Part shown: piece by piece, positions 51,961 through 53,723 of the stretch | Layout: each line of letters opens with the position of its first letter | How positions within the stretch are numbered: position 1 is the stretch's first letter | Assembly: GCA_025201805.1 (NCBI GenBank) | Contig: MU619253.1 | Location: 188,202-252,201 of the forward strand | Length of the DNA: 64,000 nucleotides | Reading direction: 5' to 3' | Source: Parasitella parasitica NRRL 2501 | Taxonomy: Eukaryota > Fungi > Mucoromycota | The notes under the pieces: generated by a model | Databases searched by the model: none | What the model saw: only the letters and a program-made list of their open reading frames with translations | Told to the model about the DNA's origin: nothing | Translations under genes and position numbers: made by a program

Positions 51961-53723
51961 ATGGAAAACAGCAACTCAATTAATTACCTTAAGGTAACGG
52001 TTCCCGAGTCGGCGCAAGATACAAGAATTAGAAAATATCTATTAAACCATTACAGAAGGGTAGTGCGATCAAAAGAAAATGTACATCGAGCATTTGAAAG
52101 ACATGAAATCACTATAAATGGATGTCCGGTGGAAGAGACTAGACGTCTCAAGAAGGGAGATGTAGTAGAAGTCAAGTACGATAAATCTATAGAAGAGGCC
52201 AACAAAATGAAGATAATTCCTATAAGGATATGCTATGAAGACGATTATTTGGCTGTTGTGTGGAAACCTTCAGGACAGGTATGTTACCAAAAAGCATTGG
52301 AACGAAATCTATCAAACCTTAATTTGAGCCGCGTTTTTTTTATTTTATGGATCAATGAACCTGATAGCCTTTTGCCATTTTCGAAAAAGCGATACAATTC
52401 AACATTGCATTAAAAGATTTGGAAGGGAATCTGCGAAAAGTATGGTGTGTAAATGAGATTCAGAAGGCCGCTTCAGGGTTGATTATCGTGGCCAAAACTG
52501 AAGCCAGCAGGGATATACTGACGGAACAATACAACAGCAACCAAATCCAAACAACCATGCGCATCCTCTGTCATGGATACGTGACTACAACAGCGACAGA
52601 CGAGTTGTTCAAGCTTGATGTGAACAAAAAAACCGAAAGCATTGTTCCCGGTCAAGTATTGAATAGCATTGCCATTGTTTCACAAACACCCTCCAACAAT
52701 GCACAATATATATCCAGGCTCGATGTAGAATTATGCACACCCATATTAAGCACGCAGCTGCGTAAACTATTTTACTTTCACTCGGATCATCCCATCATTG
52801 GCAATTCTACGTTTACGAGGCCCTTGAAGACAAATAGGGACAAAGGCTTATGTGCAGCTTTGATAGCCGTCGCTTTTACTCATCCTGTAGAGCTAAACAC
52901 ACAAATAGCCGTGGAACAGCACGAGCCTGCCAAATTCGGTGTCATGTGTGAGCGTGAAGCAAGGTCTTTTCAGAGTAAACTAGACCGCGAAGCTGACGAA
53001 ATCAAGAAATCGAACGTGCCTTGTGCTGATGTGGAGCAAAGAAAACAAGGACAGTTGTTAGCCTACATGCTGGGACAAAAAGAGTTTTGTGGTTTGATGT
53101 ACAAAATAACGAGCGATTGTTTGATTCCAAGAACCAGCTCTGAAACGCTTGTACAAGCGGCTGTTGTAGCATCAAAATCCATAGATAGCGAGTCTATTCA
53201 TGTGATTGATGTAGGCACAGGCTGTGGAAATCTTTTGATATCTATTCTTGATCAGATTTCTTGCGCTACAGGCGTTGGGGTGGACATTAGCGAAGCTGCG
53301 TTGAACGTAGCCAAAGAAAATGCAAGTCGGTTACTTTCTGATCAACAGCAGCAGCAAAGAGCCACATGGCGCATCCAGGACATGACCAGCTTGAATGACC
53401 AGAATGCGTATGATATCTTGGTATGCAACCCTCCCTATCTTGATTTTGATAAGGCCAAAAAGAGCAAAGAGCAAATGATTGCGCTACGACAAGAGCCTGC
53501 AGAAGCCTTGTTTGCCAAGGACCTCGGCTATGAATGGTATCATGTGCTGAGCAAAGTAGCGCCTGTTGTTGTAAAGGATCACGGCTATGTGATACTGGAA
53601 TGCGGCAAGGGAATGATGGAAAAAGTGTTAGCAATATGGTCTGACTGGAAGCAAGTTGCCGTCTACAAGGACGCTCAGGGATGGGATCGTTGTCTCGTTT
53701 TGCAAATGAGATGGGTTGCATAA
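51961..53723 (+). CDS. Fusion: S4 + degenerate RluA-type pseudouridine-synthase fold + HemK/PrmC N5-glutamine methyltransferase (about 557 aa)
   Basis: Phase-0 intron 52279-52367 joins the two ORFs in frame. RluA-like: ICYEDDYLAVVWKPSG, VNEIQKAASGLIIVAK, HPIIGN. HemK: AYMLGQKEFCG, CLIPRTSSETLV, DVGTGCG, NPPY. Confidence 0.85.

Follow-up and report, generated by a model that had tools for sequence, protein, structure and literature searches.

A conserved fusion of a degenerate RluD-like pseudouridine-synthase fold to a PrmC/HemK-type methyltransferase in Parasitella parasitica

Escherichia coli RluD is the pseudouridine (Ψ) synthase responsible for Ψ1911/1915/1917 in 23S ribosomal RNA (rRNA; PDB 1V9F, 2IST, 7BL5), and PrmC (HemK), an N5-glutamine methyltransferase that uses S-adenosylmethionine (SAM), docks on the release factor through a five-helix N-terminal domain. 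Among the eukaryotic members of the HemK family, Mtq1 is the mitochondrial release-factor methyltransferase and Mtq2 acts on eRF1. In a 64,000-nucleotide (nt) window of the fungus Parasitella parasitica NRRL 2501 (GenBank assembly GCA_025201805.1, contig MU619253.1, positions 188,202 to 252,201 of the forward strand), we analysed a gene, located at positions 51961-53723, that joins both families: an S4-like domain and an RluD-like synthase fold, deprived of its catalytic residues, precede a PrmC/HemK-type methyltransferase in one reading frame. RluD and PrmC are separate proteins in bacteria, but their genetics converge. The RF2-B variant alleviates the defects of rluD mutants and prmC mutants alike in E. 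coli K-12 (PMC5373646), which implies that both enzymes serve RF2-dependent termination. A synthase fold without catalytic function has a precedent in RPUSD3, which has no catalytic Asp and is considered a pseudoenzyme within a mitochondrial 16S rRNA module (PMC12710931). A literature search for the S4-synthase-HemK architecture yielded such precedents only and no description of the fusion, in keeping with the preliminary description of the locus, whose author knew of no characterised protein of this kind. The gene represents a real, conserved and apparently undescribed fusion. Both of the enzyme families that it unites are well known, and the synthase has turned into a pseudoenzyme in Mucorales.

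The gene lies on the plus strand. Its ATG, at 51961, is directly preceded by an in-frame TAA (51955-57). Exon 1 (51961..52278; 106 codons, ending in ..VVWKPSGQ) encodes the S4-like domain (about 52012-52185, including TRIRKYL at 52021-41 and FERHEITING at 52093-122) as well as the initial strands of the synthase fold (YEDDYLAVV..KPSGQ, 52234-52278). It is followed by a T-rich phase-0 intron of 89 nt (52279..52367; GTATGT..TGATAG). In exon 2 (52368..53723), an unbroken frame of 451 codons, closed by a TAA at 53721-23, encodes the RluD-like synthase body without catalytic residues (52368..52937), a helical linker with a remnant of the PrmC N-terminal domain (52938..53120; a long helix, then ..LLAYMLGQKEF..) and the PrmC/HemK-type class I methyltransferase domain, stop included (53121..53723). 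The GC content of the intron is 33%, versus 42.5% for the gene, and intron retention leads to an in-frame stop at 52411-13. As revealed by alignment, the spliced junction is colinear with full-length orthologs, with no indel, and the intron site is identical in the ortholog L017 (assembly GCA_000938895.1, LN734014.1). Coordinates and motifs agree with the preliminary description, in which one clean phase-0 intron was reported to join the S4-like, RluA/RluD-type and HemK parts in one frame. The predicted product, obtained by adding 106 and 451 residues, is 557 residues long. Exons were searched one by one, and the full-length ortholog P0002 (559 residues, labelled Parasitella parasitica, 83% identity over exon 2) was used as a proxy for the whole chain.

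The corresponding NCBI protein model, P0001 (509 residues, 100% identity, labelled Parasitella parasitica), differs in exon 1, from which 144 nt (51994-52137, 48 codons) corresponding to the core of the S4 domain are spliced out. The missing segment encodes four family-invariant residues (F45, R47, E49 and N53). Because all full-length orthologs retain the segment, the predicted 557-residue chain is the better model. The excision in P0001 is probably a prediction artefact, alternative splicing being the other possibility. Transcription as two separate genes, named in the preliminary description as an outcome that would refute the fusion, does not fit the locus, as a single uninterrupted exon contains both the synthase body and the methyltransferase.

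The N-terminal half is related to the RluA family. Exon 1 matches positions 3-90 of TIGR00005 (RluA subfamily; E = 3e-9, 36 bits), and residues 22-190 of exon 2 match positions 117-290 of the same model (E = 2e-4, 21 bits). With PF00849, exon 2 alone scores 21.1 bits (cut-off 26.8), whereas the complete N-terminal half of P0002 reaches 28.9 bits, and 22 of 30 orthologs are matched by this model. A profile built from 30 ortholog N-terminal halves and compared with PDB sequences retrieved E. coli RluD as first match (E = 1e-14, residues 6-253, including the S4 domain), with RluA, RluC, RPUSD1 and RPUSD4 ranking after it. Exon 1 aligns with RluD residues 6-105, S4 domain included, and R22, R47 and N53, which belong to the S4 signature, do not vary in the Mucoromycota alignment. 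Among stand-alone proteins, the closest relatives of the N-terminal half are of the RluD type, measure about 320 residues and carry an S4 domain.

Structural predictions point in the same direction. The AlphaFold2 model of P0002, obtained with a 34-sequence alignment, has a mean predicted local distance difference test value of 89.4 and a predicted template modelling (TM) score of 0.67, and its secondary structure fits an S4 fold in the S4 region. Foldseek comparison of the model with the PDB retrieved full-length RluD (2ist, 7bl5_7), the catalytic domains of RluD, RluC, RluA and human RPUSD1 and RPUSD4, and pseudouridine-synthase-like assembly factors found on trypanosome mitoribosome precursors (7aoi_XP, 6yxx_EC). 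The N-terminal half therefore has the structural match to Ψ synthases that the preliminary description called for. PrmC in complex with RF1 (2b3t_A; E = 7e-16, TM score 0.71 by target) and Thermotoga maritima HemK were also retrieved.

Although homologous to RluA-family enzymes, the synthase fold lacks the catalytic Asp, the active-site Tyr and the HQIR..GD form of motif III. Motif II, HRLD in RluD, reads NEIQ (52452-63, continuing as KAASGL to 52481), and the Gln codon (52461-63) occupies the column of the catalytic Asp. The Met in TMRILCHG (52554-77) replaces the Tyr. Motif III reads TQLR..HPIIGNS (52752-52808): the Arg is kept and GD is changed to GN. These assignments, made from the letters alone in the preliminary description for motifs II and III, are borne out by the profile alignment, in which the Q/E column corresponds to the Asp of RluD HRLD, the Met column to the RluD active-site Tyr, and ..LR..HPIvGnS sits on RluD HQIR..HPLVGD. 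CHG, SN and DKGL (the latter at 52839-50) form a new invariant set across Mucoromycota. To our knowledge, all pseudouridine synthase families depend on this Asp, without variation, for catalysis. Having lost the Asp, the preceding His-Arg and the Tyr, the Mucorales synthase fold is predicted to be no longer able to isomerise uridine.

The methyltransferase half, in contrast, is well preserved. Residues 218-443 of exon 2 match positions 33-252 of TIGR03534 (PrmC) with an E value of 5e-49 and a score of 167.1 bits, and the score for TIGR00536 (hemK_fam), 124.5 bits, is above the cut-off of 115.5. The model for PrmB, the enzyme acting on ribosomal protein L3, scores far lower (86 bits). The catalytic region was described earlier as intact on the basis of LIPRxxxE, DxGTGxG and NPPY, and this reading holds: LIPRTSSE (hairpin, 53121-44), DVGTGCG (SAM motif I, 53208-28) and NPPY (catalytic, 53427-38) are all unaltered, and are accompanied by GVDIS (53277-91), QEPAEAL (53490-510) and LECGKG (53595-612). 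The columns of the motif residues show no variation among the 34 aligned sequences, and the motifs are conserved in essentially all full-length members of the family. An antisense open reading frame of 144 codons (53287-53721, minus strand) is also found inside the methyltransferase exon; it is unsupported and most likely due to chance.

The same data bear on the nature of the substrate. The methyltransferase half might modify RNA, for instance by introducing N6-methyladenosine (m6A) or N2-methylguanosine (m2G) into rRNA or transfer RNA (tRNA) bound by the S4 and synthase module. Some class I methyltransferases of the NPPY type are RNA m6A enzymes, there were weak matches to PF05971 (an RNA methyltransferase family), TrmN and RlmF, Foldseek lists TrmM and Bud23, and the protein combines two RNA-binding N-terminal modules with a release-factor-docking domain that is largely absent. 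Yet the PrmC model scores 167 bits, versus no more than 24 bits for any RNA methyltransferase model, and the PrmC-specific LIPRxxSE hairpin, EPxxAL and LExG are kept in essentially all full-length members. Moreover, the Basidiobolus ortholog exceeds the PrmC equivalog cut-off (205 vs 199 bits). We regard an RNA substrate as unlikely and favour a glutamine methyltransferase.

The PrmC N-terminal domain is truncated. PF17827 (PrmC_N) was not detected in the two exons, and is recorded for none of 90 fusion proteins, versus 29 of 30 bacterial PrmC matches. Helices persist before the hairpin: in the AlphaFold2 model, one 28-residue helix and two short ones (residues 297-324, 328-332 and 340-344) lie between the two folds. 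The suggestion that the S4 and synthase module stands in place of the HemK N-domain is therefore correct in that most of this domain is missing, but the domain has not been cleanly swapped, since the PrmC model aligns from position 33 onwards.

The fusion is not restricted to Parasitella. A first homology search identified full-length orthologs across Mucorales, Mortierellomycotina and Endogonales, and an exhaustive profile search added many further full-length members, bringing the number of fusion proteins to more than 100, from many phyla. Members were found in Glomeromycotina (Funneliformis), Calcarisporiella, Basidiobolus, Zoopagomycotina (Syncephalis), Kickxellomycotina (Coemansia, Smittium, Furculomyces, Mycoemilia and Dispira), Blastocladiomycota (Paraphysoderma), Neocallimastix and Chytridiomycota (Borealophlyctis, Quaeritorhiza, Blyttiomyces, Polychytrium, Chytriomyces, Podochytrium and Physocladia). 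Further members form well-separated clades, the largest of which comprises 18 sequences and includes EukProt and MMETSP records. Rather than a curiosity of Mucoromycota, the fusion is a feature of almost all non-Dikarya fungal phyla and of some protists, and the family is wider and older than first supposed. A quick family tree follows the fungal phylogeny, in agreement with vertical descent. No Dikarya or animal protein is found among the about 60 named members listed; as many such genomes are public, this suggests that the family was lost in both groups, an absence that rests on the members listed and is not proof of loss. One MMETSP transcript, P0289, is complete (725 residues) and has both RluA and PrmC matches, showing that a fused messenger RNA exists in at least one relative.

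Two further observations concern the non-fungal and longer members. A protist clade (P0289, P0290, P0162, P0179, P0211 and relatives) features the motifs MIPRKSSE and NPPYSS. Three proteins, P0132 (780 residues), P0205 (1039 residues) and P0183 (934 residues), far exceed 600 residues and may either have extra domains or be merged gene models.

Conservation was quantified separately for the parts of the protein. Mucorales sequences are on average 45% identical to one another in the synthase part and 54% in the methyltransferase; between Mucorales and Mortierellomycotina, the values fall to 31% and 42%, respectively. The ratio of nonsynonymous to synonymous substitution rates (dN/dS), calculated by comparing exon 2 with the L017 ortholog (synonymous rate, dS, 0.43), amounts to 0.20 overall, with values of 0.23 in the synthase part, 0.32 in the linker and 0.14 in the methyltransferase. 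The inactive synthase domain is under purifying selection. This constraint, along with the catalytic losses shared by orthologs, led us to reject the idea of a private decay of the Parasitella copy. The L017 ortholog is itself labelled Parasitella parasitica; a dS of 0.43 and a difference at 17% of the residues are large within one species, and the two assemblies may represent distinct lineages.

These data also dispose of the notion that adjacent genes were wrongly joined, or that the gene is a decaying pseudogene. The different exon 1 of the NCBI model P0001 could be cited in its support. The notion is contradicted by the finding of the synthase body and methyltransferase in one open exon of 451 codons, by the recurrence of the fusion in many phyla, by the complete transcript holding both halves and by the overall dN/dS value; we consider its probability negligible.

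Catalytic residues of the synthase half vary extensively among lineages. HRLD, whose retention in orthologs would have pointed to private decay according to the preliminary description, is found in no member of the family. In Mucorales, the Asp column holds Q and the Tyr column M. Mortierellomycotina have E in the former and F or Y in the latter, and Endogonales have E and Y. In Kickxellomycotina, E prevails in the Asp column and the Tyr column varies, whereas many chytrids and Neocallimastix have D, in the context xLLD, together with Y. In scattered lineages G, K, P or A replace the Asp, and the Tyr column varies. On the RluA model, scores of 110, 103 and 78 bits were obtained for the synthase halves from Neocallimastix, Paraphysoderma and Blyttiomyces, respectively, and of 36 and 21 bits for the two Parasitella exon pieces.

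The proteins P0131 (Neocallimastix), P0130 (Paraphysoderma) and P0138 (Blyttiomyces) keep both the Asp (xLLD) and the active-site Tyr, and P0138 also retains a near-canonical motif III (KQIR). Judging from these residues, the three proteins may be truly bifunctional enzymes. The ancestor may similarly have been a bifunctional RluD-PrmC fusion, in which case the synthase may have decayed stepwise toward Mucorales, the Asp column passing from D to E and then Q, and the Tyr column from Y to F and then M.

It could be argued, by extension, that the synthase half of the Parasitella protein is also still active by way of a non-canonical residue, and that the protein is a genuine Ψ synthase plus methyltransferase. 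Conservation extends to the fold, the Arg of motif III and many residues of the core, and those relatives that have Asp (chytrids) or Glu are possibly active. Against this stand the replacements of Asp by Gln, His-Arg by Asn-Glu, Tyr by Met and GD by GN; the Gln is common to all Mucorales, while the Asp is invariant in all Ψ synthase families. Residual activity in the Parasitella protein seems very improbable, and we retain the interpretation of an inactive synthase fold.

The relationship with other HemK-type enzymes of the same genome was next considered. A canonical Mtq1/HEMK1 gene, made of three exons, is located 181 kb upstream on the same contig (G000:C17:6270-7265; L002 1105-2100). Its product has a basic N-terminus (MSSKLISRKWIQKLL), a PrmC N-domain ending in PLQYILG, LIPRWETEEW and NPPY, and its methyltransferase exon shares just 22% identity with the methyltransferase of the fusion. 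An Mtq2/N6AMT1-like gene, featuring ..LEIG.. and ..FNPPYV..ASWAGG..DGR.., maps to G000:C160 (L014, about 1203-1884). As the genome carries separate Mtq1 and Mtq2-like genes, the fusion is a putative third HemK-type enzyme, an extra paralog beside them. The possibility that the fusion simply is Mtq1 was rejected, given the separate canonical gene, the low identity and the acidic N-terminus of the fusion.

This N-terminus is also informative about cellular location. In Mucoromycota the S4 domain begins no more than 10 residues from Met1, and the stop just upstream of the ATG leaves the Parasitella protein without an upstream extension. The absence of a mitochondrial presequence, remarked upon earlier, thus holds. 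Neocallimastix keeps the fusion with the best-preserved synthase half, and the hydrogenosomes of this fungus have no genome and no ribosomes.

A mitochondrial role nevertheless deserves consideration. The fusion might be a second PrmC-type enzyme that is tethered to the large subunit of the mitoribosome and methylates Mrf1 or a GGQ protein residing on the ribosome (ICT1/Pth4-like or mtRF-R-like), or it might be a mitoribosome assembly factor. Both halves are of bacterial type (RluD and PrmC), with stand-alone RluD-like proteins as nearest relatives; Foldseek matches include synthase-like assembly factors of mitoribosome precursors, RPUSD3 sets a precedent, and N-terminal extensions occur in some of the chytrid and protist members. 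However, the acidic N-terminus with no room for a presequence in Mucoromycota, the presence of a canonical Mtq1 with a basic N-terminus, and a well-preserved copy in Neocallimastix, which has no mitochondrial translation, are indirect arguments that make a mitochondrial role improbable, slightly more so than an RNA substrate.

Beyond the observations on architecture, residue losses, conservation, paralogy and family breadth, we infer a mode of docking, a type of substrate and a location. The S4 and dead synthase module would target an active glutamine methyltransferase to RNA or the ribosome, probably not in mitochondria, a proposal to which we assign about an even chance of being right. It is prompted by the RluD-type nearest relatives, the genetic link between rluD and prmC, and the precedents offered by RPUSD3 and PrmC/TrmB. 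The module would take over substrate targeting by docking on structured RNA, most likely the large-subunit rRNA region recognised by RluD-type enzymes (around and including helix 69), a stem-loop resembling tRNA being another possibility. Docking would hold the methyltransferase beside a glutamine of a ribosome-associated protein, for instance a ribosomal protein or a release or rescue factor of the GGQ type. The fusion would work alongside canonical Mtq1 and Mtq2, and not instead of them. The family would have started as an RluD-PrmC fusion, perhaps bifunctional, in which the synthase chemistry decayed on the Mucorales line while the fold stayed under selection.

Several points weigh against this proposal. 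RNA binding, ribosome docking and glutamine specificity are all predicted by homology. The Pfam S4 model PF01479 matches neither exon 1 nor any of the 30 ortholog N-terminal halves, so that the S4-like domain is assigned tentatively, by its alignment with the RluD S4 domain and its predicted fold. The PrmC score of the Parasitella protein, 167.1 bits, is below the TIGR03534 equivalog cut-off of 199.1 bits, and the known docking of PrmC on release factors cannot apply to a protein without the N-domain. The notion of a dead module is secure for Mucorales only, and lineages with Glu or Asp might retain activity. Finally, a location outside mitochondria is probable from sequence inspection and from the Neocallimastix argument.

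A more far-reaching version of the same proposal can be formulated, though we think it unlikely to hold in full. The fusion would define a third, hitherto unrecognised eukaryotic branch of glutamine methylation, in which RluD-derived docking near helix 69 of the cytosolic large subunit allows methylation of a ribosomal protein or of a GGQ-type factor bound to the ribosome, such as eRF1 or a rescue factor resembling Vms1. Chytrid proteins would in addition write Ψ at the docking site. Fungi and some protists would have inherited the system from their ancestors, and Dikarya and animals would have lost it.

The family is of solid interest for researchers working on translation and RNA modification. 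An ancient eukaryotic fusion of two enzymes that bacteria keep apart, and whose genetics converge on RF2 termination, provides a Rosetta-stone link, suggesting that both activities act at the same ribosomal place. The series formed by likely active synthase halves (chytrids and Neocallimastix), Glu variants and clearly dead forms (Mucorales) is a graded record of decay, and shows how an RNA-modifying enzyme can become a pure targeting module. A third HemK-type enzyme is present across a large part of the fungal tree, including the mucormycosis agents Rhizopus, Mucor and Lichtheimia. Because no Dikarya or animal members were seen among the named ones listed, the fusion may serve as a lineage marker, and it is a tractable knockout target in Mucor, where P0003 is the ortholog in Mucor lusitanicus/circinelloides.

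The fusion can be compared with five described systems. RluD, in which an N-terminal S4 domain precedes the RluA-family fold, resembles the S4-like and synthase parts of the fusion, and is both the best PDB sequence match (1e-14) and a Foldseek match. The fusion differs from RluD in having NEIQ for HRLD, Met for Tyr and GN for GD, in carrying a C-terminal methyltransferase and in being a eukaryotic, nuclear-encoded protein. PrmC/HemK (E. coli 2B3T, T. maritima 1NV8) has the same class I fold, LIPRxxSE hairpin, DxGTGxG, NPPY, EPxxAL and LExG. In the fusion, most of the five-helix PF17827 domain is missing, and about 295 residues of S4 and synthase sequences precede the helical remnant. Mtq1/HEMK1 belongs to the same HemK family and also features NPPY; the fusion is a separate, old paralog, and the Mtq1 encoded by its own genome has an N-domain and a basic N-terminus.

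The remaining two systems are comparable in organization. The bifunctional PrmC/TrmB proteins (NCBIfam NF002421, which is among the profile matches obtained) likewise combine a PrmC-type methyltransferase and an RNA-modification enzyme in one polypeptide. In these bacterial proteins, the partner is an active tRNA 7-methylguanosine-46 (m7G46) methyltransferase located at the C-terminus, whereas the partner in the eukaryotic fusion is an N-terminal, inactive synthase. RPUSD3 and the synthase-like mitoribosome assembly factors (mt-LAF3; 6YXX_EC, 7AOI_XP) have, like the N-terminal half of the fusion, an RluA-family fold, which they keep as an RNA-binding or assembly module. In contrast to the fusion, they are stand-alone mitochondrial proteins with no methyltransferase attached.

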